Shown: positions 11,815-51,587, counted from the stretch's first letter. The stretch is DNA of 52,576 bases from Parasitella parasitica NRRL 2501 (GCA_025201805.1 MU619335.1:64975-117550), one strand, 5' to 3'. The notes: generated by a model from the sequence alone, not told the origin. A program made the numbers and translations.

Positions 11815-12441
11815 TTGTAGTCGGGATGTCCAAGGATAATCATACAATACGAGTGATACATCTACATGCAATATCATTGAACTGTATTGCCAATATCTCT
11901 TCTTTTTTTTTATAAAAAAAACAAAAACGCAAATATACACATTTTTGATGCTATTATTTTCACGTTATTTAATCAAGGAAAGTATTCTCATGTTGAATAG
12001 ATTAAACCCCCCATGGAATTTCAAGAAAAAGTTGTCCATATCTCTACCAAGTATACCGGGTGTTTCCAGCTTAAATCTATACGATTTTTTCGCTTAATTT
12101 GATTGCTAATCCTTATGTTCTTCTCTTTCCATACGTAAAGCCGCTTCAGTTTTAATAACAATGTTGGTATATGTAATGAATCAACTTGATGTGCAGCCAC
12201 CACACCTTGGGAAAAAAAATAGTTCGCGTAATATCCAATTCAGTTGAGCATACTAAATGCCTGTGTCATTTTACCTTGCTTTCGTTATGATACGGTATAT
12301 CCATTCGTCTTCCACTCTTCATCAAGTATTTTACATGCAGTACCATAGATAAGCCACCATTCATTGTAATTTCAAATAAAACACGTAAAATAATCATCAT
12401 TCAAACGCTCTTTTATAACTACTCCAAAACCACAACTGATC

Positions 12442-13933
12442 ATGACTTTAACAGATTACCAACAACCATCGTACAGTTCGTAAACAACTTGACGATTATA
12501 TCTGTGGGCTTATCATCGGCAGATATCAAGCCAAACAAAAGATCACTCAAATTTCACGTGAAATGTGCTTGCCAAAGTCGACCGTTACTGATTGTGTCAA
12601 TCGCCACAATAAAACAGGAAGTGGAGTAATCCAAAAACGTAGCAGAAGGCCTCTTAAGTTGTCTGAAAGAGACCAGCGTACTGTTGTGCGCAGCTTTAGA
12701 GAGAAACCATTTGATTATTTTGTCAAGACTGGCATTCCGAGTTCCTGGAGAAGACTGATAAAGTCTTGATACGTGCCTGCCTTCCTACCATTGGTATTGA
12801 CCCTGTCATGTATGTCCCTGCCAGTAGACCATGCCGTAGCCGACTTGTTCGGTACCGCATGGGCTGGTTACCTGGTAAACCTCGACCTTGTGTCTGCAAC
12901 ACGGATCACACCTCTCGCCGTCATCTTGACGAATGCCCCTCTCTCCCGCCTCTCTTGATTTCGTCCTTGCCAACACCACCAGATTCTTTTCATGGTACAA
13001 TTATTGACCATGCATTGAATCTCTTAACTTTTTCGTCACCCAATGCTTGCAATAATGATCAAAAGATCGAATGCAATATAGCATTTGCTTTATTAATTCT
13101 TTATTTCATATTAATAAACAACCTAAATTTTCGCCTGATTATTTTGTCTGTCATAATGCAAGATTGAAGGCAGCTGGAATTGACATACATCCTCAAACGC
13201 TATCAATATATGCTGACAGACACGGCTTTGGGTCATATTCCTCAGCATCTGTACCAATGCTGAAACCCAAGCAAATCGAAAAAAAGACTTGCTTGGGCTA
13301 AAGAAAAGGTTAATTGGACAGCTGCACAATGGCAGAATGTCATTTGGTCTGATGAATCTAAATTCAACGTTAATGGCAGCGATGGAAGGGTCCGAGTATT
13401 TCGAAAAAAAAGGAGAAAGGTTCTCTCCAAACCATGTTCGAAAGACTGTGAAGTTTGGGAACGGTTCAGTGATGATTTGGGCTTGTTTCTGGGCTGACGG
13501 TTTGGGTCCTATTGTAACTATGAAAGGGAGTATCAATCAAGACGCTTATGTCAACTGTTTGTCCAACCACTTCCTTCCATGGTTGCAGGACTTGAGTGTT
13601 GAACATTCCAAGGAATTTATATTGCAAGAAGACGGTGCCTCTTGCCATACTGGGAAGTATACAACCTGGTATAAGCAGAGACATCAGGTCCAAGGGTTCA
13701 ACTTCTGGCCACCTCAAAGTCCAGACCTCAAGCCCATTGAACATGTCTGGGCTTACCTTGAAAAGCGGATAGAGAGTCGTAGATACCAATTGAAGCATAT
13801 AGATCAGCTGAAGACTTGTATTCGCAACGAATGGTATGCAATACCTCAATCATTTTTAGAGACTTTAGTCAGCAGTATAGGCTCTCGATGCAAGGCTGTT
13901 ATTGAGGCTAATGGTGGCAATACCAGATACTAA
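12442..13933 (+). mobile_element. Degenerate Tc1/mariner transposase (DD35E spacing), frameshifted and interrupted by an insertion
   Basis: N-terminal HTH (QISREMCLPKSTVTDCVNR..RPLKLSERDQR), then WSDESKFN, VMIWACFW, LQEDGASCH, WPPQSPDLKPIEHVW and AVIEANGGNTRY*. Frameshifts fall in A-runs near 13280 and 13405. No TIR pair found. Confidence 0.92.
12725..13135 (+). mobile_element. 411-bp insertion with a probable non-LTR retrotransposon C-terminal fragment, flanked by a 13-bp TSD
   Basis: TGATTATTTTGTC occurs at 12712-12724 and 13136-13148; removing the insert restores the transposase (KPFDYFV|CHNARL). The insert encodes RMGWLPGKPRPCVC..HTSRRHL.EC, a Cys/His cluster like those at the end of LINE-type ORF2. 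Confidence 0.8.
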
Positions 13934-14504
13934 TTTTGCTATATTATAAAAATAAACATGTTCAACTTTTTATACTTCAAATCTTATACAACATAGTTCT
14001 GATATTCCACTAATAAGCTTATTCATCAAAAAGCCGTTTTCAAAATTTGCATAAAATTTCTGACACCAAAAATTGACTTGTCTTCAGTGATATGTGTATT
14101 TCTCTTCCTTCTGTGCACACTAGAACAAACGCATAAATAATATATATAAAGCAACGTAGGAATTTCTCAAGCAAACGACTGGTTTTTCAGAGTAGAAGTA
14201 CGAGTAGCGCACATACTGTGAGGGCATTTCTTGCAACTTTTTAGCCTTGTGCTAAATCTAAACTTTACATTGCTGGAAGCACAATATACTTTTTCTCTTT
14301 TTTTTTTTTTTGTTTTTTTGAGACGGAGAAGATGATAACCGATATCAAAATTGTGTCATTGACCCTCAATGATGTATGTTGCCTGTTACTAGTCTTATCG
14401 TATCCAATTCCCGAATCTGCTAAAAAAGAATCAGAGAAGGAAATGTAATTTATAGTTTATTGAACAGGATGATGATATACAGGAATTAATAATACAATAC
14501 AGAT

Positions 14505-15464
14505 TTAGACACAAGTGTAGCCACCATCAACAAACAACTCGATACCTGTAACATAAGTGCTGGCATCACTAGCTAAAAATACTACAGCGCCCCTGAGCTC
14601 TTTAGGCTCGCCTACACGACCCATGGGAGTAAAATGGTTCCATTGCTTTTCCCACTCAGGGTTGTTTTTGAGAGTAATGTCCAATAATTCGGTTCTAATG
14701 TAACCAGGGCAGATGGCATTGACACGAATGCCTTTTTGAGCCCATTCGGCAGCTAAAGCCTTGGTCATTAATGTAGTAGCGCCCTTGGATGTATTGTACT
14801 AGGAGTAAACTTTAATAACGCGTGTTGCTCGGTGCATTGGCATTTTATACATGTACTTACGGCACATTGGGGTTGAGGACGGTTGGCCACATGGCCAGAA
14901 ATGGAAGATGTAATGATGACACTACCCTTGCCCTTCTCGAGCATGTACTTGGAAGCAGCCTGAATACCGTAAAATACGCCATTGACGTTGATATCCATGG
15001 TCTTTTTCCAGTCATTCAAATCGTATTCCTACAGGACATGTGAGCATATGTCGAGTCCTATGCCAGCACACGTTCTTACCTCAGATTTACCACCAATGCT
15101 GATGCCAGCATTGGCAACAAAGACATCGATGGCGCCAAAGTCTTTGTAGATTTGATCAACCGCCTCTTTGACAGCATCAGGGTCGATGATATCAGCCTTA
15201 TAAGCTTTACAGGTAACGTTATAGTCCTTGGCGATCTGGGCAGCTGTATCGTGGGTCTTGTCGCTGGAGACAAACATGATGGCAACATTGGCACCAGATT
15301 CAGCAAGGGCTTTGCTCATTTCCAAGCCGATGCCTCTAACAGCGTTTCTGTAAATAATGGTGTTCCTGTGCTCCACATTTAAAAACTTACCTTCCGCCGC
15401 CAGTGACAATAGCAACCTTGTCTTTAAGTGAGAATTCAGGGATAGTAGGAAGTGGAGCAGACAT
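14505..15464 (-). CDS. Short-chain dehydrogenase/reductase (sorbose/xylulose reductase-like)
   Basis: VAIVTGGGRGIG, VANAG, YNTSK catalytic motif, RVNAICPGYIRT and VDGGY; three introns. Confidence 0.93.
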
Positions 15465-15880
15465 TTTCAAATAATTTAATCGAAAAAGAAAAAATCTAGT
15501 GTGGTGTTTGACATGTTTGGCTCCTTTTATAGACGTTGAGAAAAGAAAAACCAAAGGTTTCACTTGTTAGTGAGGTTCTCAAATTTGGCATTACTAGATA
15601 TGGTCAAATCTCCTCATGTTTAGACTGTATTCTCCGTGGATATATGTCATTTTTTGGCGCTAATTTTCCGGTTGTACAATAGATTCTACAGCCTACCATT
15701 CATGTTTTATCTCAAAGAAATTAAAGTTAAGAAACTAATGTGAGAGACTAAAGATACTTTGCTTTAGGTTATAAAAGAGCAATTTATTTAAAATTACAAC
15801 GGGTTACCAACTATAAAATAAGTTGAGTTTTACCAAAACGCAAATCAAGTATTGTTGGTAAGTATAATTTTATGGTTTTT

Positions 15881-15886
<6 letters not shown>

Positions 15887-15914
<28 letters not shown>
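15887..15914. repeat. (GA)n microsatellite
   Basis: Direct reading of the sequence. Confidence 0.9.
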
Positions 15915-15918
<4 letters not shown>

Positions 15919-16029
15919 GAGATAGAGATATGAAAAAAAGTATGTGTTAGTGTATCAGTATGTTTTCGTGCTATGATTGATCAATAATTGCTTTGTTTTC
16001 TTTGATTGATTGCTAGGTGTAAAGTAGAC

Positions 16030-17500
16030 ATGGACTGAATCCCCTTCTCTTAGGTGATCACTAGTTATAAAGATGGATTAACTCGAGATAATGCAAATGT
16101 GTTGCCAAAATTAACCGCGAACTCTTTCTAGGGAATACAGGCTCTTAAAAATTTGACGAAGTTGCTTTGATTCTAGCAAAAAGCTTATCAGACTGAAGGT
16201 CCCCATCTTGTGTCCTAAAATGCATTTTTTATACCTGTACAATTGAACCATGCAAGTGGATTTTCCAGCGAAATCAAAGTAGCTAAATTAATCACCAGTG
16301 ATTTGGGTGAAAAGATGGATGTCACTTTAAATATAGACGTCGATCCTCAGGTTTTTGTTCTGCTGTTGTTGCAAAGTAGCTGCAGTGACCTTTGACTTTT
16401 TGAATTCAATGAAGCATATTTCTACATCATCTTTGTCTGCCTCAAAGTCGCACGTAACGAGGGTGCCAATTCGTCTTCCATAAGAAGTTTCGATTTTGTT
16501 AATAATTTGCATTCTTTGGGTTGATACAGATACCGTTTCACCTTCTGTCAGAACCACACGCGTATCATCCAAAAGAGGCCGTAAAGCACTGATAAATGCA
16601 TGCAAATGAGATGGTTCAGAAAGATTTGGTTCTCTCTTGCACCGTTTCCTGTTGTTGAGGCTGAAAAGAGGACCTGAAGTATTGTATTAGTCAATAAAAA
16701 AAATCGAAAACCTTCCAAATTCAGAAGGTGAATGAGCGAGTGCTGTTAATAATCGAGTGAAAGATAACTGAATGCTTCCCTGCATTTGAGACAGTAAAAT
16801 TAAGTCCTGACTTGCTACGAAATCTCGTTATTATTAGAGCCCTGAAGTTAGAAATCATGTATAAACCTTCACATTTTCGATTTATTCTATTAAAAAACAA
16901 TACATATCAACCACTATTTTGCTTGTTAATAATGTATCATCTATGTCATTCGCTTTTAATGGTCGCAAAAGACGCCTTATTGTTATTAATGATGAAGAAG
17001 AACAAATGTCAAATCAGTCGTCAGTCTTGCGGACAAATCACCACTTAAGCAGCTAATTCACTTTCATGATGCATGCACTCAACAAAGGTAAAAATTGGTT
17101 GCAAACACGACATCCCATGCAAAACTAGCAAGTTTTCTTTTCTTAGCTTCATTGTATGCCTGCCGCCAAACATGAAGTTCAAAAAAAGACAGTTAGAATG
17201 TTATGTTGCAGGCTCAACTATCATCAATCCTCCAGCTTCGTTTCTAAAGCCATCCAGTGGGCTTCGAAGCAAAGTCCAGACATCCAAAGAGAAAGCAGAT
17301 TACTGGAGTGCCAATGATTTCAAGACAATGAGCCGCGATCAAGTCTCAGCATTTGCAATTAGACTTGCTGGCCTTGGTTGCCTTTTGTTTGGAGTAACTT
17401 TCCCCTGCTTCGACCCAAACTCCACCACAGCGGAGCGCACACAATTCAACAATTTAGCCCTATCTTTTTTGAAGGCAAGTATATAAACAATAGAGAGGTG
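16030..17500 (-). pseudogene. Degraded gene with a PD-(D/E)xK-like nuclease motif, of a type common in Mucoromycota repeats
   Basis: Fragment EGETVS..YGRRI..D..DVEICFIEFKK..QQQQNKNLRI (16327-16605), surrounded by stop-interrupted frames. Boundaries are approximate. Confidence 0.5.
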
Positions 17501-18234
17501 GAGAAAAGCTAGTACACTCAAATATAACAGTTTGGAATAAGACAGGAAAAGGGATATGACGTCGGAGAGTGGAGAAAGTAGATAAAAGTAATAAGACCAT
17601 CAAGAACAGTAACCAACTGTGTAAGTCATCACTGCTTCGTCTATAAAAAAAAAAAGAAAAAAAATAAGTTAAACATATCGTTATACACTGCTTCCTCCAC
17701 CTCGCATGAGAACCCAAGTCAATGATGTTCATCCGAAGACTACTACTGCAATGGTTGGTATCATGATGTTCATCCAAAGGACTACTACTACAAGCAACTT
17801 GTTTGCTGAGGTGGTTAGGAAGCCAAAAGTATGTCAAGAAAATAAAGAAAAAGAATAAAGACTTACCAAAAATAGTAGCATTATAGAATTCTTCGAGGCA
17901 CTCATTGCTTTTGCCTATAATAGAAAAAGAGAGAAACCGAGTCAAAAAGTATGGTAATAAACCTGCAATAAATAGCATCAAGACAAGGTGTGATTGGGGT
18001 GGTAGTTCAAGCCAGACTTGGATCTGATGCCGTGGGAATGGGGATGTAGGAGTGGTTGGGGATGAAGTTGGCGTAGTGGGAAGGGTTTTCTTTCACCCAA
18101 TCTTCAAAGGCAGAATTATTATCAAATATTTCTTCTACAATAGACAGATGAGGTACCCAAGGTCATCAGATGTAGAGGCCATGATAATCTCTTATATTAA
18201 AATGATAGAAATCTTTTTATATTAAAATGATAGG

Positions 18235-19254
18235 CCACCTCATTACAAAATTTTTTGCTGATTTCTTGCTTGCTATTGGCAATGGCTCCTTCCCTATTCA
18301 GCCCAACACAGCTGACTTGATTCGTATTTCGTAATAAAAGATGCTTCTGCCTGGCAATGATATTTCTGTCCTTTGCCAACATGTATATGTCTACAACAAC
18401 TTTGCGCAGGCCATCCTGACACCGACCAATGCTTTTGTTTCTAAATTAAATGACTTCATGCTTGAGAAGTTTCCCGGTAAATTCACTGAATTCCTGAGTA
18501 CTGACACGGCGTTGAGTGAAGACGATGCTTTAGAGCTGCCATCAGAATTCATGAATTCTCTCAACTGTGGTAGTCTTCCACCTCACCAGCTCAAGTTAAA
18601 AATTGGCTCGCCAATCATGATGCTCAAAAACATCGATCCTACTCATGGTGTTTATAATGGTACAAGGCTTATTTGTCGAGCATTCACAAGGAACACTATC
18701 CAGGCTGAAGTTGCAACTGGACCTTATCAACGCAATGTTGTGCTCATACCCAGAGTTACCTTAAACTCGATAGTTGAGCAAGTCGGCGTAGACTTCAAGC
18801 GTTGTCAGTTCCCTGTCAGACCAGCTTTTGCCATGACGATAAATAAATCGCAAGGTCAAACTCTGGACTTTGTAGGGCTGTATCTTCCTGTCTCAATTTT
18901 CTCGCATGGCCAATTATATGTCGCTCTATCTCGAGTTAAAAGGCCAGATGACATCTCAATCATCATCAACCCCAAGCCAAGAAGGAGTATATACATCAAA
19001 CGTTGTCTGTACTGAGATTTTTCAAAATTAATCAACTTCGAGGATTTAAACAAAAAATACCAAATAATCATAATATATCGTATCTTTATACAATACATAA
19101 ATGCTATTTCCACTCAGTATGTTTTATTTCGTTTGATTTAGCATTGTATTATGTGGGACAGCCCGCTGCAGGCGCGAGCTGTGCACCCCCTCAATTAGAA
19201 CGAAGGTCGATTTTTTTCACCGTAGTTCGGAGGGGGGTGTAAAATAGCTCGTAG
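18235..19254 (+). mobile_element. 5'-truncated Helitron: C-terminal PIF1-like helicase fragment plus 3' terminal hairpin
   Basis: FADFLLAIGNG, LPPHQLKLKIGSPIMMLKNI, NGTRL, QFPVRPAFAMTINKSQGQTL and FSHGQLYVALSRV. Frameshifted C-terminus TSNVVCTEIFQN* ends at 19031. GC-rich inverted repeat at 19175-19251. Confidence 0.85.
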
Positions 19255-19846
19255 TAATAATATATGTTGTTATTCTAATACATTTTCTTGTGAAATAATA
19301 AAGAGTTGGAGTATTTTTACACATTAGCTCACTCTTCCACATTTGATATTCTGTCATTTATGAATGCTTTGTAATATCTTGTTTGAGGGTTTCAAAAGAG
19401 TACTTTTTAAATTAACTATTCACGTTATTTGTTTTATGATACAATGCGTAATTTAAGTCGTCTCAATAAAATGGTAAGTATACCGTATGGGACCGATTTG
19501 CTGTTCGTAGATTCGCCATTCTTGCTTGAATCAAGTGCAATCATTGATAGTAACTATAGGCATTGTTACTAATGTTTATAGCTGCTCCAAACCCCCAAAT
19601 TCCTATACATAAATGCTAGTCAGGAACAACCTCGTTAATCACGAAGGATCCGTATAAGTAAGTAAACAAAGCAGCTGTTGCTATAGTTCGAAACATCCCA
19701 TTTAATCAGTGCTTTTGAAGTGCTTCCAACTATGTTTAAATGGTCACATTTGGAAGTTTGAGCCCATGCCTGTGCAGTTATAAAACCCCTTCGCTCCCAG
19801 CAAAAAAGATCTTTTATATCCTTTCAATAAACCTTCAACATAAAAT

Positions 19847-20869
19847 ATGGCTCAATTACTTGGAACACTTGCTAAATGGGCAATCCCTGTCGGCCTTGCC
19901 TTTGGTGGTGCTCAATCCGCCATGTATGATGGTAATGTATCTTTCATTAACTTGCCCCCGAGACAACAAAATATTTTAACAATGTATTATAGTCCAGGGT
20001 GGATACAGAGCTGTCATTTTTGATCGTATCCAAGGTGTCAAGCCCTCCTCTATCGGCGAAGGCACCCACTTTTTAGTCCCTTGGCTTCAGCGCGCTGTCT
20101 TATTTGATGTTCGCACAAAGCCTCGCAACATTTCCACCACCACTGGCTCCAAGGATATGCAAATGGTGTCTTTGACTTTGCGTGTTTTGCACCGCCCCGA
20201 GATCAAAAACTTACCCTTGATCTATCAAAACTTGGGTTTGGATTACGACGAAAGAGTTTTGCCTTCTATTGGTAACGAAGTTTTGAAGGCTGTTGTTGCT
20301 CAATTCGATGCGTCCGAACTTATTACTCAACGTGAGGTTGTCTCTGCCAAGATCCGTGAAGAATTGTACAAACGTGCTAGAGACTTTAACTTGGCTTTAG
20401 AAGACGTTTCTATTGTAAGTGGTTTATATATGCATAGGACCGTTTACTGATTCGCATCCTAGACACACATGACTTTTGGTAAGGAGTTCACCAATGCTGT
20501 TGAACAAAAGCAAATTGCACAACAAGAAGCCGAGCGTGCCAAGTTTGTTGTCGAGCGTGCTGAACAGGAGAAACAAGCTTCTATTATCCGTGCTGAAGGT
20601 GATTCAGAGGCTGCCGAGATGATCTCTACAGCACTGGACAAGGCTGGTGAAGGGTAAGTGGACAAAATATTGTCATTTGCCTTGTTACTAAAACGCTTGT
20701 CTTGTTTTATATACATATATACATATAAATATATAGTTTCATTGCTTTCCGTAGAATCGAAGCCAGCAAAGACATTGCACAAACTCTTTCCCGAACTGAA
20801 AACGTTACTTATTTACCCAGCAGTGCTCAGGGTGGTAGCAATATGTTGCTTGGTGTCAATGCCCAGTAG
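19847..20869 (+). CDS. PHB1: Prohibitin 1
   Basis: [58 protein letters not shown] and [16 protein letters not shown]; three introns. Confidence 0.95.
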
Positions 20870-21030
20870 TTTAGTGGAGTCGAATTGGAATCTGTAATTA
20901 CACGTAAAAAAGAATATTCTCTTCCTCCACAAGTCTTGAAACAGCAAAAATAAACTATTGATATATAAATTTTGAAGGATCATTATGGGCTCAAACATAG
21001 AATCGAATAGAAAGAGGGATGTTTGTAGAG

Positions 21031-21210
21031 AAATGTTTTACTGACATGTCTAATGGCTGTTGGCAATCAGATGGGATAAAATGGGTGTAGCTGATCGTCG
21101 CTCGCCTGCATCCAACATTTGGGAATGACTGCGGCTTCATCGGTGTGGTTGCTCTGAATGCGAAGCCAAGAGGCCAAGAAATGGTTGCGTAATGACCAAG
21201 CACATTGTGT
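21031..21210 (-). ncRNA. Candidate box H/ACA-like structured RNA
   Basis: GC-rich intergenic island. On the minus strand it reads hairpin, AGAGCA (21150-21155), long hairpin (TGTTGG/CCAACA), then ACATTT (21031-21036). Folded by eye only. Confidence 0.3.
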
Positions 21211-21374
21211 TCTCTATTGCTTTTATTCCTTGCAGCCGCGAATTTTGTTTCTGTCATCAGGTGAATAGATTTTCCTTCAGGGCGAATTTTACTTTCCGGA
21301 AAGAGTGTAACATCAATAATCAAAAGAAAAATGGACGGCGCGAGAGCAGCTGCGTCTGCGTCTTTTTGACGAGA

Positions 21375-22040
21375 ATGGTTCACGTTCATTCAAGACTAAT
21401 ACAGCCGAACAGCCTTCACCCTAAAATAGCGACATTAGTTGACTTGAAGGACACCATCAGCAATGAAGGGTTGTGCCAATTGGATATTATCTATGTGCTG
21501 CCGCCAAGCGTATTCGTTGACCCATATCAACTAAAGGACTTGCAAGAAACCATCGGCAAAGCGACTCTGTTTGGTGAACATGACCTGGAGCTGCCTCTGG
21601 AGAAGATCAAAGAGACGCGAGGAAGCATTGTGTTCTTGCGACAGACTCGTATCCAGCCCAAATGGCAGCTGGAATTGCCTCTGCATCTTCGGTACCAACA
21701 GCCTTCTATCCACACTGACCATCAGACTATTCATATTGAATCGCCTTACGCAGGTTGGACATGCGGAAATGAAAGTCAGTCATGGCCACCACTTTCAGAT
21801 GAATACAGCCTATTGCCATCTATTCAAGCAAACAGCGCATCATTTATCAAGTTATCAGGCGAGCCAGCCACACTCAATTTAACTGTGCCCATCGGCAAAG
21901 TACAGGATGCATCCGTAGTGACATTTGGTACTTTTGGTGCAGTTGTTCTCTGCGCATGCTGGATCATTTATTCTGTTGGTTTATCAATTAAAAAAAGAAG
22001 ACGAACAGAGGCAAAAGGGAAAAGGAGGAAATCAGAGTAA
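21375..22040 (+). CDS. PIG-X/PBN1-family subunit of GPI mannosyltransferase I
   Basis: LPPSVFVDPYQL, GEHDLELP and LPLHLRYQ motifs; VPIG followed by a C-terminal TM helix and basic tail. Confidence 0.85.
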   Translation: MVHVHSRLIQPNSLHPKIATLVDLKDTISNEGLCQLDIIYVLPPSVFVDPYQLKDLQETIGKATLFGEHDLELPLEKIKETRGSIVFLRQTRIQPKWQLELPLHLRYQQPSIHTDHQTIHIESPYAGWTCGNESQSWPPLSDEYSLLPSIQANSASFIKLSGEPATLNLTVPIGKVQDASVVTFGTFGAVVLCACWIIYSVGLSIKKRRRTEAKGKRRKSE

Positions 22041-22069
22041 AACCAATGATATAAAATTATGTGTTCTGT

Positions 22070-24407
22070 TTACAGTTCAATCAAAGGAGCCTCTTCAACA
22101 TGTTGTTGCTGTCTATCTGAAGAAGTTTGTTGCGGATACTCGTGGCTTCCTGCGTTATACAAGACGCTGTCCTGATTGACGGTATACTGATGGCCATGAG
22201 TAGCTTGCATAGCTTGGGGGTGCTGATGTTGAACTTGAACAGGAGCGATTGCAGGCTGCGGTTGCTTTTGCTGGTTCACAGGTGGCCATACGTGCTGAGA
22301 CGGGTATGGATGGCTGGCATTTGGTATAGGTGCGATATACGGTTGTTGCGGTTGCTGTTGCGGTTGCTGTTGCGGTTGCTGTTGCGGTTGCTGTTGCGGT
22401 TGCGGATGCGGTTGCGGTTGCGGTTGCATATGCCCAATTACAGGTGTTGCTGTGAGTGGAGGTTGGGCATAAGCTTGCTGCACAGCAGGCGGTAATTGCT
22501 GAGGAAGAGGAAGGGAAATAGGTGTTTGTGGAAACAAAGGATACCCATTGGTAGGTTGAGCAGCTTGAGTGTAAGCAGGATATTGAGGAGGAGTTGGGTG
22601 GTTATAATAGGCCTGGTATGAAGACGTGCTCGTACGTTGAGCGGTATTAGCTAGCCTCTCTTCAATTAGTTTATCGTATGCCTTTACAGCTTGATTTAAT
22701 TTGGTGTGTAAATTAACGAATAGCTCTACACAAGAGATTTAGCGGCTTATTCCTTTTTTGTGCCAAACAAATTACCATGCTTCTGACTAGTATCGTTTAG
22801 TGTTTGAACAAGTTTGGGCTGAAGTGAACCAATTTGAGTGTAAAGCTTACTAATTTGCGTATCACCGGATATGTCATTTGCTGTTGATTGAACACGTTGC
22901 ATTAGCATAGAGAATAGCTGAATGTTTTCCATATCAATAGGAGACAATTCGTTGCTATTGTATTTTGGATAGTCTTTCTTGGCTGCTGATATTTTTATGT
23001 CTTCCAATGAAGCAGCTATAGCTGCTGCGATATTGGCGTCTTCTTCCTCTTCTTCTGCACTCTTTTTTGCGGCTGCCGGAGGCTCTCCCTTTCTCTCGTT
23101 GTTGTAAAAGCTAGTCGACTTCTGTTGCTGCTGAGATTCCTTCAAAGACATTTCAATGGCCTTTTTCATGTCATCCTCAAATCGGTCATCATTAAGAGCG
23201 GTGTTGCTACTATTTGTATTTGACGTAGTTGTCGTAGTTGTAGTGGTCAGTGCTTTGTTCTTAATAGAGGGTGTAAAGGTTGGAGTCAAAGATGAGGATA
23301 TAGAAGCTGGTGTCCCAAGCAAGTTTGGTACAGCATCCTTGTCAGCTATCTTGGCAAGCTTTACTTTGATATAGCATCCATCGCATACTCGAACAGAATC
23401 ATTAATACCGAGATGAGGCAAAGGAATGCTCTTTGATGAACATTGCTGGCAAAATGTGGAACCACATTGTCGGCAATGGTGCTATTTTTAAGGCAAAACA
23501 TACAAAAAAAATGGGGGGGGGGAGGGAAGAGAGGGAAGGGGCGAATGATGATATAGATTCAATACATGTGTTCAGACAAACATCCTCTCCAAAACTAACC
23601 TTTCTGGTCGTCAATGTAAAAGAAGTTCTGCATCGTTCGCAACAATCAGAGTCTGTCCATTCTGGTGCCTATTTGGGAGAAATGTGATTAGATATAAAAA
23701 AAAAGAGAATTGTGCCAACACACACATACCACTGCAGTTTCGAATAAGCTTGGATCGACCTTGTTAGTGATAGGTGGAAATGTGTATCCTTCAGCGCGTA
23801 GTAAGGTATAGGTATCTGAGATGTAACTAAGCGCAGGATTTCCTTTAGAAGCTATTCCCCACACTTGAATCAAAGACAATGCCTTTGTCTTTACATGACT
23901 ACTTCCAGCCTACGCAGTTAATACTGTTAGAAATGAAACGACGAGTTTCACGATAGACAAAAGTCTACATACAGGTGTCTTGATGATGTGTGTTACTTCC
24001 TCCATGAATTCTCGAGTCGCAACCTCTTTTACAAACGAACTGCCACTGTTTTTTACACAGGTGTCTACCAACTATCACACGAAAGTCTTGGCAATGAGAA
24101 TCGTAATGACTCTATACAAAAGTAGAGCAGCAGGGTCTTACCTCAAGCGTAGACATAACAACATTTGGGTTCTTGTGATTTAAGCGTTGTTTCAGCGAGC
24201 GCATCGCATCCTTTGCATTTACTTTCTTGCTTCTTATTTGGTCACTGATTTCAAGGTGAAGCGAAAGGTCAACTTGCCCAGCAGGCAATAACTCTGAAGT
24301 AGCTTTCTCTAATGCAGCATTAGCGCAAACTAATTTCCTTGAAGGTGTCGCAAATACTTACCAACGAGTTCATCGAGGCCATTTGATCCCCACCAAAACG
24401 ATCCCAT
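22070..24407 (-). CDS. VPS27: ESCRT-0 subunit Vps27/Hrs (VHS, FYVE, UIM, Q/P-rich tail)
   Basis: VHS domain ([19 protein letters not shown]), FYVE ([25 protein letters not shown]), two UIMs ([12 protein letters not shown]; [12 protein letters not shown]) and PQQQ repeats. Confidence 0.93.
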
Positions 24408-26874
24408 TTTAAACAGTTTTTGTACGGTAGCGGAAAAGAAAAACGAGAAAAGGGAGGAGCACCAGACACTCTTTTCTTAGCCAGTGTTCGGCCAATCATG
24501 AGAATTTGCGATGCTCTATCCAGGTGAGCCGTGGTGTAGATTTTCGTCAAACAATAAACCATAATCATTGGTAGTAATCAGACCATCCAGCGTCATACGG
24601 TCATAGACATAGCTCAAATTTGAATGGCATTATAGATTGCGTTTGTAGAGCTTGAAAAAATCAGCAATTCAGAAACTAGACTTTTTTAGCAGATGTTTTT
24701 ATCAACTGCTCAATACAATTCTATCATCAAATCACGTACGACAGCCAATTAAAAAATACTCAACATATCGTAAACCAGGTGATATAGCAGCTATGAAGAC
24801 GTGAGGGGATTTAGTCTAGTGAACATGCAAGGTTATTTTTACTTGACTTTGTTTATTGACCGAAAGCACAAAAAATTTCGACTCAAACACTAGTTATCTT
24901 GCACCATTCTGTTTGTCTGCTACATGCTATGTTATGAAATACACAGTGATCGAGTAACCTCCATTTATCTTTGTAATATATTCATTTTTTTTTTTATAGT
25001 TGAGCATTTGTCCTTCTGTCATCATTCTTAGATTATTAAATACAACGTTGAATTCTATTAGATTTTTAAAAATGATACCTGAAAAGTAGCGTGTATGCTT
25101 TCCCAAAATTTAATTCGTGATGACTCTCAGTAATAATATGTGTAAAACCATGATATGCTAACGTACTCCTTCTAGTCTTTGTGTTTTAAGAGGGCTTTCA
25201 TCGGATGATGTCAATGCAACAACCTCATCCTGGACTCTGTTCCAAGCATATGTATACAAACATAACGATATTCTGCCTATGGAAAATGACAAACTTGTTT
25301 TCAACTGCTACTTTATGTTATACATCCAGCATGAAAACACTGCTCTGCTATCCTGCTAAATAGTAGGCGATCTGCTATAATTGATAACGCTCTTTTTTTG
25401 AATTTCAACAAAAATTTGCAGGTTAGCGATGGAGCAACTGGACAATATTTGACACAAATAAATATTATAGGGTTTCCAATAAACCAGCGAAAAAGCGATA
25501 CTTTGTTTTTTAGCGGTGAAATGTGATAGTTGTGTAGAATAAATATTTAAAATGCTCTATCAGGACGGTATATTACAGTTTTCAACTTTTACAGAATTGC
25601 CTGTACGGTGCTATTTCCAGTTTTTTTTATTGTATTAGGTTGTTGATAAATTTGACATCATTAGATGGAGGTTTACAAGGAATAATTTGATTCACGTTTT
25701 ACCTACAGTTAAATGATTGTTCATGACATTTGCTAAAGCTTCTGATAGCGTATTTCACCCTGTGATTAAACATTTTCTGCTAGTTGAATTGTGCATAATG
25801 TTTGGATCGAAAGGCAGGCCTATTTTGGACATCACAAAGTTGTCACTTCTACACTTTACACGATAAAACTGATTAGTCATTTTTTATTCCATGTTTTTCA
25901 GTAACTTTTAACGGAAAATGGAGCTGCGAGAAGGTGTGGCTTGATTAAGGTTTCGAAACACGCATGAACATAACAAATACGTAAACCACTTGTCTAGTGT
26001 ATCTCTGATTGATCAGGCATTGTTTGCTAGCATGAGATCGTTAGTTCCATTGCAAGGATCAAAATCTTCAAGTAATATAGATTTTGACATGCTATTTACA
26101 TGTATGCCGCCTAGATTTCAAAAGTTTGCATAAAGTAGCTGTAAATGGAAATTTTCTGTACGACGAAACTTCCATGGATATGTCGTAGTTCAAGACGGAC
26201 ATGATTTGCTTGCGCGAACTAGCAAGATCTGGATATGCTAAAAAAGGCGACTTTGCTATTTTGTCTTATCTCTATACAGACTTATTAACCAATGAAAAGG
26301 TCAATGCCATCAATGTATTTCGCATGGATCTTTAATAGATAAATTTTTGCAACGCTAGAAAACAACATTTTGTAATTTGAAAGTGTGCAGAATGCACATG
26401 GACCATGCTGATATTTCAGAACATGCAATATGCAAGAATTACAAATCAACGCCCCTTCTATGAATTTTGCTGTTTGCGGGGAAATTACTGTGTGTGAATT
26501 CTGGGCAATACCTGCGTAGCAGATTATACTATATCTGACCATTGTTTGGATGCACATAAACTGGGTTTCATATATACGTGTAGGACCTGTTCGTTGGATG
26601 GATGGTGTTTTACATGGACAATGGCTATATTATGAATATATAATTTCACATTTAGACACACTATTTACGAGAAGGTTCAAACTCATTGGAAACGTTGTAC
26701 TTCATTAATGCCTGCTACTTGTGTATGTGGAATGTGGTTGCACCTGAATGACCTAGTTTTTGGCCGCCAGCGGATCCAATTTTGATCTCACATGCTTCCC
26801 TATTCCTGGATTCCCTTTGCATATTCTTTTGTAACTGTGAGTTTATTGAAATGTCAAATGAGAAAAAAGAGAAG

Positions 26875-45293: not shown

Positions 45294-45953
45294 ATGGCTG
45301 ACACTGAAGAAAAGAAGATTATCAACCAAGTAAACACATAATACGCACGATTTGGCAATGCAGACTCTGTGTAATAACTAACGGTTCCTTTTATTCAGGA
45401 AGAGGAGGAAGTTGAATCCCCTGATGTTCACTTTGAACCGCTTGTCAAATTAGAAGAGGTCGAAGTAAAGACTAACGAAGAAAATGAAGATGCTATTTTC
45501 AAAATGTAAATAATTTGAAAAACGCGTTAAATTCGAACTGTTGGTATCCTAACAAACAAAAACAGGCGTGCCAAGCTGTTCCGTTACCATAAGGAAAGCA
45601 AAGAATGGAAGGAGCGTGGTACTGGCGACGTCAAGTTATTACAGCACAAAGAAAACAAGAAGATTCGTCTTTTGATGCGTCGTGATAAGACTCTTAAGGT
45701 TTGCGCCAACCATTTTGTTGATTCCACCATGAAGCTTAGCCCCAATGTTGGCTCTGACCGCTCTTGGGTTTGGAATGCCTTTGCTGATGCCTCTGAAGAA
45801 GAAGTTTCTGCCGAAACTTTTGCTATCCGTTTTGGTAACTCTGAAAATGCTAATCTTTTCAAGGAAGAGTTTGAGAAAGCTCAAAAGAACAATGAAGAGC
45901 TGAAGAAAGAGGATAAGAAAGAGGATAAGAAAGAGGATGAGAAAGATGCTTAA
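45294..45953 (+). CDS. YRB1: Ran-binding protein 1
   Basis: [30 protein letters not shown] and [14 protein letters not shown]; two introns. Confidence 0.95.
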
Positions 45954-46531
45954 ATTCAATAAATTATGCAAACCACACCACTACCTTCACCGCCTTCACC
46001 ATAATCACCACCTTCTCCCTTTATTAAATATACTTTTTCTCTTTGAATTAAGAATACATGCGACTATATATCGATAAATCTTTTTTTTTTTTTTTATTTC
46101 GTTCATCAATGTGGAAACTTTCGATGACCAGAATAACAGATCTTGCCCTAAATTTTGAGCCAATTTGGCATTAATACGCTATTCCCTGAGCTGAAAATGT
46201 CTCTCTTTTTATGTTCAAGCTAAGGTAGTTGACTTTTGGCAGTATTTAGATATTACTGTTGCCTTTGTAGATATTGCTGCCATTTGTATTAATTTAATAC
46301 GGCCGGAGCGAAAAGCTTGCTGACAGCTTACATTAGATACATATTAAAGCAATCTTATCAAAATTGAGCAGCTAAATAGCACAGGCCTTTTATCCACAGC
46401 ATAACAAAAGTTGGTTACTGAATTTCACCTGTTTAGCTTTGCTTATGTTGCTTTTCTTAATTAGAGGCCTTACAGTTGACGAAACTAGGTTGGGTCAATG
46501 AAAATAAATTTTGGTCATTTCCAAATTGAGT

Positions 46532-46664
46532 TGGGACACGATTACAAAAATGGGCCACTACTAGGAAAATGGGTCACGAATACGAAAATGGGACGTTAAT
46601 ATGAAAGTGGGACATCGACATGAAAATGGGACACATAAGAGAATACGAGACACGAACACAACTG
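46532..46664 (+). repeat. Left subterminal array of 19-bp units (TGGGAC-N9-AAAA), 6 clear units plus 1 degenerate
   Basis: TGGG starts at 46532, 46551, 46570, 46589, 46608 and 46627, an exact 19-bp period. Confidence 0.9.
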
Positions 46665-47340
46665 TGGAACTATACCGAACAGATTCAAAGAGTTTTTTTC
46701 TTGGTTCAATTTGAGGGCGCAGCCCTGAAAACAGCAACCTTTTATAGAACTTGTATCATATTCTAGTACTTTATGATCTAAGTGCCAAAGTCAAAATTTA
46801 TTTGTGTACTATTTTTACTTGGCTAACAAGGCCTTTAAGTAATAGCTGAAATAATTCTGCTCAGGTCTAAAAATGAATTGAATATGTTATCTTGTTTTTC
46901 TATTGTTGTTATACCCAATGCCAAAATGGGTGCTCTTACCAAAAAAGAAAAAAAAAGCATGATATACATCAGTATCGCGATCGAAAAAATCAATCAGGTT
47001 TGTTGGTTAATTGAGTTGGTAAATAGATAGAAAAGTAGATTGACAAGTAGTACTTCGAAAGCTTTGTATAGATTCATTTCAGTTAAAATCTAAATGAGGA
47101 TATTCTCGATGAAAACTAGCTAGGTATTTATAATTTATTAAAAACAGAGTCTGGTCTTGATATACAATATAACAACATTGGCAGCCGGGCGATATCAGTA
47201 ATTGGATTAGAAAATATATCAACAGGTGGGACCCATGTGTGTGCATTCTCTTTCGGATCTCTCGATCGGGTTGACAAGATTTGATCTAGTTGACAGATAA
47301 ATGTTGTCTTGAACTCTTTTTACTTCTTTTCAATTAACCA

Positions 47341-49960
47341 ATGCCACGCATACCTATTTACCCTGAAGTGGAGAAGTTCATAATCCTCAAGAAACGTACA
47401 AAGCTAGAGGAGGTCGAATCTGATAACAAGAAAGAAAACTCTACCACTCAGACCTCAAAGAGAACATGTAAGTAAAAAGACACTTTATGTGATTCCAAGG
47501 TTTTACAAGCTAATGCATATAAAGCTACCAAGAGGAAGGACTCTCCTGCTTTAACAACAGCAAAAAGGAATGCAAAGAAAAGTCGCCAAGCTAGTACTTC
47601 AGCAGCATCATCCTCTAAGAATAATTGTAGCTCTTGTCAAGAGGAAGGGCATAGCTCTGCAAGAAGTTCCCAATGCAAAAACTATAATCCAAAGCTACCG
47701 GAACGTCTACAAATCAGACTTGGATCCCATCAAAGATACACTCTCTCTGTTCCATTTGAAACTCTTTGTAATGATACTCCAAACAAAGCCAATGCTTTAA
47801 AAAAAGTCAAGGGCATATCAAGCTTTGTCTGTGAAGTCTTGTTCAAAGCTCAACTATTTGTAAACCATTTTATTCTGCAACATCCAAACAAGCTGACAAA
47901 TGACTTCTTTGATCAAAATTTTTGGTATACTATTTCAAGAGTTATTAGGGGCAGCTCAAATAAAGTAAAGCCAACTCTGCAGGCTTACAAAGATACGAAA
48001 AAGGAACGACCTGCAGGATAGAACCTAGATGTGGATCAACTTGCGAGCTCTTTTGTTAACTTGTCTGCTACTTCAAATGGTAGCTTATTTGTTTCAGAAA
48101 ATGGATTAAAGAATTATGGACAATCTCTGTCAACTGCATGCGAGACTGTCGCAACAGCATATAACAACTACTATATTGAAAACTTTGAAAAAATCATATG
48201 CGACTACTTCATATATACACTGAAGACAGAGTACCCCGTAAGTAACGAGACATAATAACAAGCACTTCAATATACATGTTCAATTTCTCAAATTGTTATA
48301 CTAAAATTACATAAACTAGGATGCGAAGATCAGCTGTATCAAGAACTTGGTATATAATCACGTATACAATCAAGTGCTTACACATTCCCAACCTTCATCT
48401 GTATCTGTTGATATTCTTGCCCTATTTGATCCGGATGTGGCCAGTAATCTTACAATTTTCTTAAATCCTTTGATTTTAGAGGTCAAAAATCGCATTTCCA
48501 CGCTTCCATTGACTAAAGAAAGCTTAAACAATGAACCCTTCAAAATTTTACCGCCATTACGGTATATCCTCAACAAATACGATGATATATACAGGACCCA
48601 AGCTGCTCAAAAAGACAAGGCCGACTCAACGAAGCCCCCGCTTCCAAGACGTTTTAGTTTATTCCCAAATCCCTCATTGCACTGGCGGTTCATAAAGATT
48701 GATGCCCAGAACCTGACCGGAATTTTCCCAGAGGCCAAGCAAAAGAAGCAAGCCAATGAATCCTCTTTTGATCATCAACAAAGGTGCTTCTATCAAGCTT
48801 TTGCTTTCAAAAAGCTGGGTATTCAAAGGCAAATACTGCTAATACACATACCTATGAATCAAACTGCTGATAAAAAAATATATAGTTGTGAAAAGCTTCT
48901 AACATTGCCTGAAGAAAAAGGAAGAATGTTTCTTAACGGATTGTACACTGATGGCTATACGTGCAGAGTTTTATTTGCTAGAAGAGTGCTTCCATCATCT
49001 CCAGAAGACAATACCTGTCTAGAGTTGGATGATTTTTCAAGCGAAGAGGTGAACAAGCATTTCCGTCCATGCACTGTAGACCCGGGAAGACGGGATCCTT
49101 TCGTCTCTTATCATGGTGGTACTGACATACGTCGCTTGTCCTCAATCGAATACTATAATATGGGTGGAAGTGTAACAAGAATGAAAAAGCAACAGAAACA
49201 CAAACAAGAACTAGGCATTGAAAAGATTGAAACAGACATTCCCTCGCCTAAAACTGCATCTGTGGAGCAATTTGTTCTGNNNNNNNNNNNNNNNNNNNNN
49301 NNNNNNNNNNNNNNNNNNNNNNNNNNNNNNNNNNNNNNNNNNNNNNNNNNNNNNNNNNNNNNNNNNNNNNNNNNNNNNNNNNNNNNNNNNNNNNNNNNNN
49401 NNNNNNNNNNNNNNNNNNNNNNNNNNNNNNNNNNNNNNNNNNNNNNNNNNNNNNNNNNNNNNNNNNNNNNNNNNNNNNNNNNNNNNNNNNNNNNNNNNNN
49501 NNNNNNNNNNNNNNNNNNNNNNNNNNNNNNNNNNNNNNNNNNNNNNNNNNNNNNNNNNNNNNNNNNNNNNNNNNNNNNNNNNNNNNNNNNNNNNNNNNNN
49601 NNNNNNNNNNNNNNNNNNNNNNNNNNNNNNNNNNNNNNNNNNNNNNNNNNNNNNNNNNNNNNNNNNNNNNNNNNNNNNNNNNNNNNNNNNNNNNNNNNNN
49701 NNNNNNNNNNNNNNNNNNNNNNNNNNNNNNNNNNNNNNNNNNNNNNNNNTAAGCCATGACAACGAAGAAACCAAAATCCATCAGGTATTGAAGTGTAAAA
49801 CTTGAATATTTACTGGAATCGCGATGCCATGGCCTCAAAGAACATGCTCACCATTGCCACATCAATTTGGTGTGGAAATGGCCGCCCCCAGGTCTTCAAA
49901 AGACATACCGCCACCTCCAATGTGGTTGTTGCTGCTCACTCCGGTGAGTCAGCAACTTAA
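47341..49960 (+). pseudogene. Fanzor1-type (TnpB-derived) RuvC nuclease gene, multi-exon, apparently inactivated in this copy
   Basis: RRFSLFP.PS...RFIKID, LYTDGYTCRVLF, RuvC-I TVDPGRRD and EYY..GG. After the gap come HQVLKCKT[C] and RuvC-III WNRDAMASKNM..GRPQVF. Introns at 47468-47524 and 48238-48319, probably also 48829-48885. In-frame TAG at 48019-48021 and a 1-bp deletion near 49805. Confidence 0.88.
49280..49749. other. Assembly gap (470 N), expected to hide the RuvC-II motif
   Basis: Run of N. Confidence 1.
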
Positions 49961-50185
49961 AGATATTGCAGGTAAGAAGCTGTAACAATTCTGATTCTTC
50001 TGAAAGATACTAACATTGTCTCCATGTTCGTACTCATGTCCCATTTTCATCTTGTTGTCCCATTTTCGTATTCGTGACCCATTTTTGTAATCGTGTCCCA
50101 ACTCAATTTGGAAATGACCAAAATTTATTTTCATTGGCCCAACCTAGTTTCGTCCGTCAACTGTACTAGTGTACTTGAATCGTCA
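49900..50185 (+). ncRNA. Candidate Fanzor omega-RNA precursor (scaffold overlapping the ORF 3' end; guide from right flank)
   Basis: 12-bp hairpin at 49928-49956; position matches the known TnpB/Fanzor layout. Boundaries are inferred. Confidence 0.55.
50018..50100 (-). repeat. Right subterminal array of 19-bp units, 4 clear units plus 1 degenerate
   Basis: CCA unit ends at 50024, 50043, 50062, 50081 and 50100. Confidence 0.9.
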
Positions 50186-51082
50186 TATTTTTCCTGAAAG
50201 CCAAGTCAACGAAAAAATACAAACAACACCTTTTAAAACTATTATCTATTTTTTAGATAAAGATAATTAATGTCAATTAAACTATGATAAAGATATGAAC
50301 CTTGTTGTGTCCATAGAGTACCATGGCTACCACTATTTCAACTCGGTTGTCATGGCAGTCATTCCTGATCTGATCTTGAGGCTAAATGTCACCGTGTTAC
50401 TGTATTCTATTACAATAAATAGAAGTAACAATAATAGAGTGTCGTGTCGTATAAGAAATCATCTTAGGTTCTACTTATTAAATTACGAAGTTAAGCTTAC
50501 CGATGAATGATTCACATTCATAATGATTACCTGATTAAATATAGAGATAGGTCTTGATCTGGCTACTACTGTGTTATGCTCTTGTTTGACAATTAAAATG
50601 TCAAACATGATTAGATTGTATTCATTGACTGGCTCATAAAGAATTTATTCTAGTTTGAATAGACAACCTCATGTCAATCAATGAAATTAATAGCTTAGTA
50701 TCTGGTAAATTAAGTTTTTATTACTTTCTTTTTCTTTCATCATATACAATCACCCACTTTACTCATTTTCAAGACTGATTTATCAGAATGAGAAATTATT
50801 CAAATAAAACGGTTGTGAATTAATCAGGTTAAGATCTCGTTTATTACATGGAAAAATGATGATTTATATACTAGTGAATCTAAATGGACTGAGGAGGGGG
50901 ATAAGATATAAGTGCGAGACATGCTGTAAACTAGAGAATGGACGATAGATTTTATCTATTGTCCATGAACATGTCATGTTAAGTTATAAATAAGGAACAT
51001 GATCCATTGGGATATGTTCCTAAATTGTGTTCAGGATTGAGTTTACTAGAGTTTGACTTTCGGTTGGGAAATCGACACATCA

Positions 51083-51587
51083 ATTGCTTGGGATACATTT
51101 TAGTATAAATAGAGATCATATCTTATATCAATAAAAGTCTTAATAACTTTCTTTATTTTGACATTTACATAACATTTCGCTGGGTCCTTTGACACTGGCA
51201 CAACAGAGATGAATTGTCTTTTTGGAAATAGATGTGATTGTTTTTGATTTATGCCTGACAGGTTCATGACACCCAGTTACGGGATCCGTGTAGCTTTATC
51301 TCAAAATAATCTGTTAGACAAGAGAATTATTTAAAAAAAATAGTTCCTAAAACATCAGACATATCCCTACTACTTTCAAAACAATTCTAGATTATTATTT
51401 CATCTTGTAAAATTATATAAATTCGATATAATGTTGTGCCAGCGTCAAAGGGCACAGCGAAATGTTATGTAAATGTCAAAATAAAGAAAGTAATAAAGAC
51501 TTTTATGAATAAACCAGATACAAAACTGAAGACTTTTATTGACATAAGACATGATCTCTACTTATACTAAAATATATCCCAATCAAT
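51083..51587. mobile_element. Foldback/MITE-like element with long inverted arms
   Basis: 51083-51205 is the reverse complement of 51433-51587 (e.g. TTTGACATTTACATAACATTTCGCTG vs CAGCGAAATGTTATGTAAATGTCAAA), with an insertion of about 30 bp in the right arm. No ORF. Confidence 0.75.

Follow-up and report, generated by a model that had tools for sequence, protein, structure and literature searches.

Does a transposon that appears to carry an RNA-guided nuclease still operate as a working system, or is it only a remnant of one? This question is raised by a locus within a 52,576-nt stretch of the genome of Parasitella parasitica NRRL 2501 (GCA_025201805.1, MU619335.1:64975-117550; this whole stretch is called the window, and positions are counted from its first letter). 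To our knowledge, eukaryotes have no native RNA-guided DNA nucleases other than the Fanzors, whose in vivo role for the transposons that encode them is still open. The analysis indicates, with a probability of roughly 0.88, that window positions 46473-50163 hold a degenerate copy of a non-autonomous transposon of the Tc1/mariner type, which is present many times in the genome and has an intron-bearing Fanzor1 as its sole gene.

The element has the layout TA-CAGTTGACG...CAACTG-TA, and a fuller reading of its ends gives TA-CAGTTGACGAAACTAGG...CCTAGTTTCGTC(CGTC)AACTG-TA. The left terminal inverted repeat (TIR; 46473-46610, plus strand) has the tip CAGTTGACGAAACTAGG, and the right TIR (50022-50163, minus strand) carries a copy-specific CGTC tandem duplication in its tip (50151-50158). 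A repeat finder paired two inverted arms of 133 nt each, at 46478-46610 and 50022-50154, which are 88% complementary. In a global alignment, a single mismatch and an insertion of 4 nt in the right tip were the only differences over the first 82 nt of the two ends, in agreement with the TIR length of about 82 bp given in a preliminary description of the locus; past this point the similarity was carried by 19-nt units. Five direct repeats of 19 nt (TGGGnCAC...AAAA), located by the repeat finder at 46532-46645 on the plus strand, are likely to represent putative transposase binding sites. The boundaries 46473-50163 thus rest on arm finding and end alignment, with the two TA copies of the target-site duplication (TSD) at 46471-46472, preceded by CCT (family consensus YAT-TA), and at 50164-50165; the empty site predicted earlier follows from them. 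The TIRs have the CAGT-type tip that characterizes Tc1/mariner-type elements, and the true length of the element is about 3.86 kb. It had also been called complete, with exact ends; the TA-bounded ends stand, but the copy contains an in-frame TAG and a 1-nt deletion, and its right tip is altered by the CGTC duplication.

The element belongs to a large repeat family. When the window's own assembly (32.8 Mb in 450 contigs) was searched, the left-end query matched 41 places, and a 24-nt terminus pattern occurred at 78 sites, as compared to none for the reversed control. Paired termini mostly lay 3.3-3.9 kb apart, about 28 copies had a recognizable left end, and a TA preceded every terminus that was read with its flanks in this genome and in two others. 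The 78 termini, the inverted arms and the TA duplication bear out the initial view of a TA-flanked transposon with matched TIRs, and elsewhere, too, the TIR family is associated with the same open reading frame (ORF). Since long N runs lie inside nearly all copies of this assembly, the number of intact copies cannot be counted from it. A second subfamily, with the tip TCGAC and not TTGAC, comprises 4.4-kb pairs, one 5.9-kb pair, and miniatures of 183 and 221 bp. One 4.4-kb member (L082, C39:33219-37625) carries a different Fanzor-like gene (VVMIDEYLTSQICPRC), and similar pairs occur on C42, C9 and C56; the miniatures, at C6:288606-288788 and C9:221993-222213, consist of only the two ends of this subfamily. 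In Mucor flavus, the TCGAC tip is paired with a Fanzor 81% identical to that of the window family. Because the TCGAC tip thus goes with different Fanzors in the two genomes, ends and cargo must have been exchanged.

By sequence profile and predicted fold, the cargo is a Fanzor1. The Asp codon of the VDPG motif (RuvC-I) lies at 49079-49081, a CxxC remnant (KCKT) at about 49790-49804, and the Asp codon of the WNRD motif (RuvC-III) at 49823-49825. A single gene with these three motifs had been proposed, and all of them are present, but RuvC-III is out of frame in the window copy. The window sequence TVDPGRRD aligns with VIDPNKRD of SpuFz1, the Fanzor1 of Spizellomyces punctatus. The family encodes a zinc finger (CNNC...CKTC) next to WNRD; in the window copy the first CxxC falls within an assembly gap and the second is broken. 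Two sister copies (L031 and L070), which span this gap, read PLVVFGDG and, 42 residues on, VDINEFKTSK-ICNNC. The canonical RuvC-II site is therein occupied by Gly (VVFGDG), and a glutamate stands 7 residues before the first Cys, so that in the sister copies the sequence filling the gap includes the RuvC-II glutamate, whose absence would have spoken against a Fanzor. A rearranged RuvC-II with shifted glutamate has been described for all Fanzors (PMC10530073, PMC13565253).

Single window exons matched nothing significantly in Pfam, a single-sequence search of the PDB gave only E = 1, and the last exon of a sister copy taken alone reached E 0.005, which is below threshold. A phmmer search with window 48320-49279 (exons 3-4, read through an in-frame intron) against 1.84 billion representatives retrieved 296 hits, most of them fragmentary gene models. 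The Pfam threshold of PF07282 (zinc-finger domain of TnpB/Cas12f) was exceeded by two relatives, the full-length P0097 of 690 aa and P0077, and all exons of the window and sister copies were colinear with P0097, including an N-terminal CCHC knuckle. Only a family profile built from this alignment gave a clear result against the PDB, where it matched SpuFz1 alone (E 1.6e-15), over the range from RuvC-I to RuvC-III. An AlphaFold model of P0097 was of mediocre quality (pLDDT 66); its seven best Foldseek matches were SpuFz, PpFz and GtFz structures (E 1e-8 to 3e-3), and the next match had an E of about 1. This fold evidence refers to the relative P0097 and not to the element's own spliced protein, and it reveals the RuvC/TnpB fold expected of a Fanzor. 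The earlier assignment of the cargo to the Fanzors is therefore borne out by family profile, PF07282-bearing relatives and fold matches.

The gene lies on the plus strand. A 5' untranslated region (UTR) intron (47124-47184, GT..AG) is documented by a joint in an RNA contig, with boundaries uncertain by 2 nt. Coding exon 1 (47341-47467) starts with an ATG, has the same beginning as the annotated model P0001, and is followed by intron 1 (47468-47524, GTAAGT..AG), whose joint 47467>47525 was seen in run X7. This run was judged to be RNA from GT..AG joints in the neighboring gene, and the joints in the 5' UTR and at 47467>47525 show that the family is transcribed and spliced. Coding exon 2 (47525-48237) encodes a basic tail, the CCHC knuckle (47626-47676) and REC helices; like coding exon 3 (48320-48828) it is colinear with P0097, and the intron 2 between them (48238-48319, GTAAGT..AG) corresponds to the join YP/DAKISC in P0001. 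Exon 3 is followed by a 57-nt in-frame GC-AG intron (48829-48885), which resembles coding sequence, as the raw ORF is open straight across it; the intron is supported by loose ends of RNA contigs at 48828 and 48884 and by P0001, which agrees with it and reads GIQSCE over the join. The first part of coding exon 4 (48886-49279), with TVDPGRRD, runs into the assembly gap (49280-49749). Real sequence across the gap is available from L031, which is 97-99% identical on either side, from L070, and from a gap-free copy in another assembly (L051). DNA contigs from three sequencing runs place 644 letters between 49279 and 49750, and the written gap length of 470 N is therefore wrong. Known from the sister copies and not from the window copy itself, the missing part consists of 266 nt that end exon 4, a 68-nt GT..AG intron, a 202-nt exon reading ...KSKMPLVVFGDGLKNK...LLLVDINEFKTSK, a 65-nt intron, and 43 nt of the last exon, which begins with ICNNC; in the sister copy this preserves the frame. 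The rest of the last coding exon (49750-49960), containing the broken second CxxC and WNRDAMASKN, ends at the family stop codon (49958-49960). The gene thus has five coding introns besides UTR introns, and the intact protein, summed over window and sister-copy exons, would comprise about 821 codons.

Three features set the window copy apart. An in-frame TAG at 48019-48021 (plus strand) replaces a codon that is CAG in the Mucor flavus copy and in collapsed contigs from each of the four runs. After 49804, a C has been lost from the TGC codon of the second CxxC; this loss is unique among 15 copies, as the 14 others read TGC or TGT, and it shifts WNRD out of frame. The RNA contig shows only the version with this C. 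Summed DNA depth appeared to imply that about half of the sequences lack it; this was taken as an artefact of summing contigs, as 14 of the 15 assembled copies have the C. Finally, the CGTC duplication is absent from all 25 other copies; it is real, since DNA contigs of two runs match 50125-50530 with 0 differences. Because of the stop codon and the frameshift, the window copy is unable to make a working nuclease and, judged by its sequence, is a dead relic that no longer serves as a nuclease source.

No transposase was found in the gap-free copy L051, from which it follows that the element is non-autonomous. The ends, the TA duplication and this transposase-free copy all agree with the earlier classification as a non-autonomous Tc1/mariner-like element. 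Tc1-like transposase frames of up to 405 aa are present elsewhere in the genome. Several candidates for an autonomous partner were considered and rejected. L083 (C125:67264-72583), a 5.3-kb element with related long ends, has two ORFs of about 210 aa without Pfam match, and also holds a 246-nt perfect hairpin and a nested 1.3-kb Tc1 element; the transposase belongs to the latter, which has its own ends. In L070 (C185) a nested Tc1 with other ends sits in the right repeat, the 4.4-kb elements with TCGAC tip carry another Fanzor and no transposase, and a 5.2-kb relative in Mucor flavus has no transposase ORF. Within the window, 12461-12715 (plus strand) weakly matches the helix-turn-helix part of a Tc1-like transposase (E 3e-7).

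For intact members of the family the following cycle is proposed. A Tc1-like transposase encoded elsewhere would move the element, and the partner would be flanked by CAGTYGACGAAACTAGG. The nuclease made from intact copies would be loaded with RNA that stems from the 3' tail of its transcript. This transcript would read through the right end into the flank, and a spliceosomal intron would remove the right inverted repeat, so that about 27 nt would separate the terminal hairpin from the TA (31 nt in the window copy with its duplication). The complex would then recognize YAT-TA beside a match to the right flank, that is, the emptied donor site, and cut it, and repair would restore the element. 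That empty donor sites are cut is inferred from the literature on TnpB and Fanzors.

The part of this cycle that concerns the 3' tail rests on an RNA contig over 49750-49971 that continues directly with TTTCGTCAACTGTA, which comprises the element's final 12 nt and the TA. It defines a 3' intron (49972-50147, plus strand) with the donor GTAAGA, the branch sequence ACTAAC at 50009 and the first AG at 50146, which takes out almost all of the right inverted repeat. Of 25 copies, 23 have an intact donor and all keep the branch sequence, and the tract free of AG is kept as well. At the end of the ORF, 49928-49956 (plus strand) form a stable RNA hairpin (-19.7 kcal/mol, z -6.0), which is a candidate for the core of the guide-RNA scaffold, and the 72 nt upstream of the donor fold stably (z -3.6). 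The left end folded as RNA was not better than shuffles, and a search against Rfam yielded only a sub-threshold chance match. The same layout recurs in two elements with other Fanzor families: L082 has GTAAGT, ACTAAT and the first AG 12 nt from the tip, and L084, the intact element that encodes P0097, has GTAAGC, ACTAAT and an AG 8 nt from the tip. The latter (L084:2547-5865, Mucor flavus) is a 3.3-kb TA-flanked element between two CotH genes, with an apparently intact 690-aa Fanzor1 gene, and its 3' tail comprises two consecutive intron-like units, GTATGT..AG and directly thereafter GTAAGC..AG. In Fanzor1 structures the 3' TSD lies within the scaffold (PMC13565253), and the guide would therefore start at about 50166, inside the range of 50164-50166 suggested before; the flank carried as guide by the read-through RNA is predicted to be 50166-50185 (plus strand).

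Several results weigh against the interpretation given here. No autonomous partner with matching ends was found among the loci examined, although a TIR search had been expected to reveal one, and no genomic Tc1-like transposase frame lies between the ends of this family. An empty allele, likewise anticipated, was not seen in the four runs, which contained no joint 46472>50164; a joint 46097>50780 was discarded as it has sides of only 21 nt and lies within repeats. A single RNA contig, overhanging by 14 nt, supports the 3' splice. Given the composition, the lack of AG in the tract is improbable to a modest degree only (P 0.014, for no AG in window 49972-50147, and 0.04), and the whole unspliced 3' tail folds no better than shuffles (z -1.2). 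Besides the N gaps in nearly all copies of the assembly, the Mucor flavus copy L051 has two frameshifts. Substitutions between copies amount to 4.1%, 4.3% and 6.0% at the three codon positions as compared to 5% in introns; this third-position excess is weak, and the sequences give no clear signal of selection on the protein between copies.

A wider proposal can be formulated from these data: in at least three Mucorales Fanzor1 families the right repeat would sit in a spliceosomal intron, and splicing would build the guide from the hairpin, the last 8-12 nt and the flank, so that the repeat would serve the transposase and the scaffold the nuclease; YAT-TA would be the footprint of the target-adjacent motif (TAM), and the element would have moved between distant fungi. 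We put this forward tentatively, as a combination that is rather doubtful in its entirety. The best-surviving alternative, whose chances fall not far short of even, is that the 3' intron is an ordinary UTR intron, for example one that avoids double-stranded RNA, and that the guide derives from unspliced RNA with the inverted repeat as its scaffold. Guide RNAs (fRNAs) published for other Fanzors do extend over the right inverted repeat (PMC10530073), there is low-depth coverage of 50028-50224 by RNA contigs, and the active guide RNA of PpFz1, a Fanzor1 from Parasitella parasitica, holds an unspliced GCAG/GTAAGC. On this view, however, it would have to be explained why three families whose repeat sequences are unrelated all have the acceptor 8-12 nt from the tip, and why a stable hairpin precedes the donor by 13-15 nt here and in L082, and likewise in the PpFz1 guide RNA; the poor folding of the unspliced tail also argues against it. 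A literature search found no paper that describes spliceosomal processing of a Fanzor guide.

Evidence that bears on the TAM comes from the sequences next to the element. For every terminus the 8 nt outside were read, and the sides were set by side-specific matches, the tip variant and pairing. At position -3 a T was found in 28 of 28 left flanks, as compared to 5 of 29 right flanks (A5, C8, G11, T5; Fisher's exact test, 2e-11). At -4 the left flanks had A in 21 of 28 cases (the right flanks were not tallied for all 29), and at -5 a pyrimidine in 16 of 18, with no preference on the right. The resulting left consensus is YAT-TA; the window copy, with CCT-TA, agrees at the invariant T, and two Mucor flavus copies have the left flanks CAT-TA and GAT-TA. 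The earlier expectation of a TAM ending in CCTTA, to be refined by a logo of left flanks, agrees with this family-wide pattern at the invariant T. In known Fanzor1s the 5' TSD forms part of the TAM (PMC13565253), TAMs are AT-rich and 4-5 nt long (PMC13565253), and the TAM of PpFz1 is ATN (PMC11423790). The left-flank pattern fits, by analogy, a TAM of which the 5' TSD is a part.

The transposases of Tc1/mariner elements function as symmetric dimers and have known preferences that form a palindrome centred on the TA; a symmetric transposase should not yield a one-sided pattern. The T at -3 is likewise one-sided in the TCGAC subfamily, which has a different Fanzor, and in the 183-bp miniature copy without a gene, and for this reason an explanation based on the transposase stays viable. 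It would hold that the transposase, or an asymmetric transpososome, favors YAT-TA as a target and that the Fanzor is a passenger without a role in the spread of the element. The motif is present in every copy, which a pure model of survival after excision does not predict for the newest insertions, and the protein bears no sign of selection between copies. Nevertheless, we regard this alternative as unlikely, as the right flank has no preference whatsoever and the motif occupies exactly the position of a Fanzor1 TAM including the 5' TSD, with the same AT richness and length of 4-5 nt. That the window copy itself is a working homing system, making nuclease and guide against its own empty site, as the preliminary description had it, is highly improbable: its ends, TA duplication and three catalytic motifs are present, the family is transcribed, and the upstream transcript enters the left end at the locus with 0 differences, but the TAG at 48019, the loss of a C after 49804, which shifts the frame of RuvC-III, an RNA contig with only the C-containing version, and the CGTC duplication, unique among 26 copies and real in DNA contigs, all speak against it.

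The decayed copy in the window has close counterparts in other fungi. Window 46473-50163 was compared with copies at L051:5137-8993, L086:1804-6991 and L088:5274-5967; L051, L084 and L086 originate from accession BAABUK01, Mucor flavus KT1a (PMC11385716). Over 3.2 kb, non-coding parts included, L051 and the window copy share 94-97% identity, which is within the range seen among copies of the window's genome, whereas the host genes that flank L051 reach an identity between the two genomes of only 68% for a gene of 2.8 kb and 87% for exons of ribosomal proteins. The syntenic site in the window's genome is without a copy. A third fungal assembly holds a fragment of 97-98% identity next to a host gene of 75% identity. 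Parts of the element were also contained in runs under several species labels; in one run with another species label the copies were mostly 95-99% alike and the window locus was absent. Since the copies are 94-98% identical and the adjacent host genes only 68-87%, the comparison points to a recent horizontal transfer of the transposon as the simplest reading.

The surroundings of the element in the window were also inspected. A highly expressed gene lies upstream (45300-46485), with two confirmed introns at 45330-45398 and 45506-45565, and its RNA contig enters the left end of the element by 13 nt. Downstream, the regions 50600-51200 and 51137-51500 have a DNA depth of 10,000-25,000, as compared to about 32 for the single-copy flank, and therefore contain a very high-copy repeat. 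The latter region is bounded by a 69-nt inverted repeat pair (51137-51205 and 51432-51500, 93%), which marks a short TIR element some 364 bp in size.

That a mariner-type element without a transposase carries a Fanzor is a kind of association known since 2013 (PMC3627910), and the window copy itself adds little to it. The 3' intron across the right inverted repeat is a new lead provided by the family. With a conserved intron of this type, a DDE-type transposon could retain long repeats for transposase binding and still have a compact guide scaffold beside the flank, and if the spliced RNA should be the real guide, native Fanzor guides that were defined by heterologous expression may be mis-drawn. 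The family further offers a natural TAM logo from 28 independent insertions, one-sided as the homing model predicts, and its near-identical copies bear on the suggested travel of Fanzor elements between Mucorales.

Among known systems, Mariner elements that encode only a Fanzor1, such as PUl-4 (Bao and Jurka, 2013; PMC3627910), are similar in architecture, and Fanzor1c has been associated with Mariner/Tc1 elements (Jiang et al., 2023; PMC10530073). The present family shares with PUl-4-type elements the TA duplication, mariner-type inverted ends, a Fanzor1 as sole gene, the lack of a transposase, and the presence in multiple copies. It differs from them by its Mucorales-type host, by belonging to a different sequence family, by ends of 135 nt with 19-nt repeats, by five coding introns in addition to UTR introns, and by the 3' intron across the right repeat, which is undescribed in those papers. 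SpuFz1 (PDB 8GKH, 9CEU-9CEZ), the sole PDB match of the family profile and the best fold match of P0097, shares with the family RuvC-I, a RuvC-II glutamate in the shifted position, a zinc finger and a RuvC-III with WNRD, and its TAM, CATA, among those of characterized Fanzor1s, ends in TA like YAT-TA. In contrast, identity in the fold alignment is only about 16%, the guide RNAs are unrelated in sequence, and the present family is known from sequence alone.

PpFz1 (PDB 9CF0, 9CF1) also derives from the Mucorales, and its TAM ATN resembles the AT at -4/-3 observed here. Its 71-nt guide RNA contains a small hairpin followed 13 nt later by GCAG/GTAAGC, the same arrangement as the hairpin and GCAG/GTAAGA of the window family; the GTAAGC of PpFz1 lies 33 nt from the guide end, which is too close for an intron. 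PpFz1 belongs to a different protein family, as the two were linked by a fold match only and by no profile match in sequence, and no counterpart of its FRI insertion was seen in the window family; the window's genome lacks a 35-nt piece of the PpFz1 guide RNA. With the TnpB systems of IS605/IS607 and their omega RNA, for which restorative homing is described, the family shares the logic of a nuclease gene with a predicted guide at the right end that extends into the flank and a putative TAM in the left flank. In IStrons, whose guide overlaps with a group I intron, the RNA is either spliced or used as guide (bioRxiv 10.1101/2023.11.20.567912), and intron and guide would meet in a similar way in the present family. 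Unlike TnpB systems and IStrons, the element described here is a DDE-type mariner relative in a eukaryote with a spliceosomal intron, and its splicing may build the guide and not compete with it.

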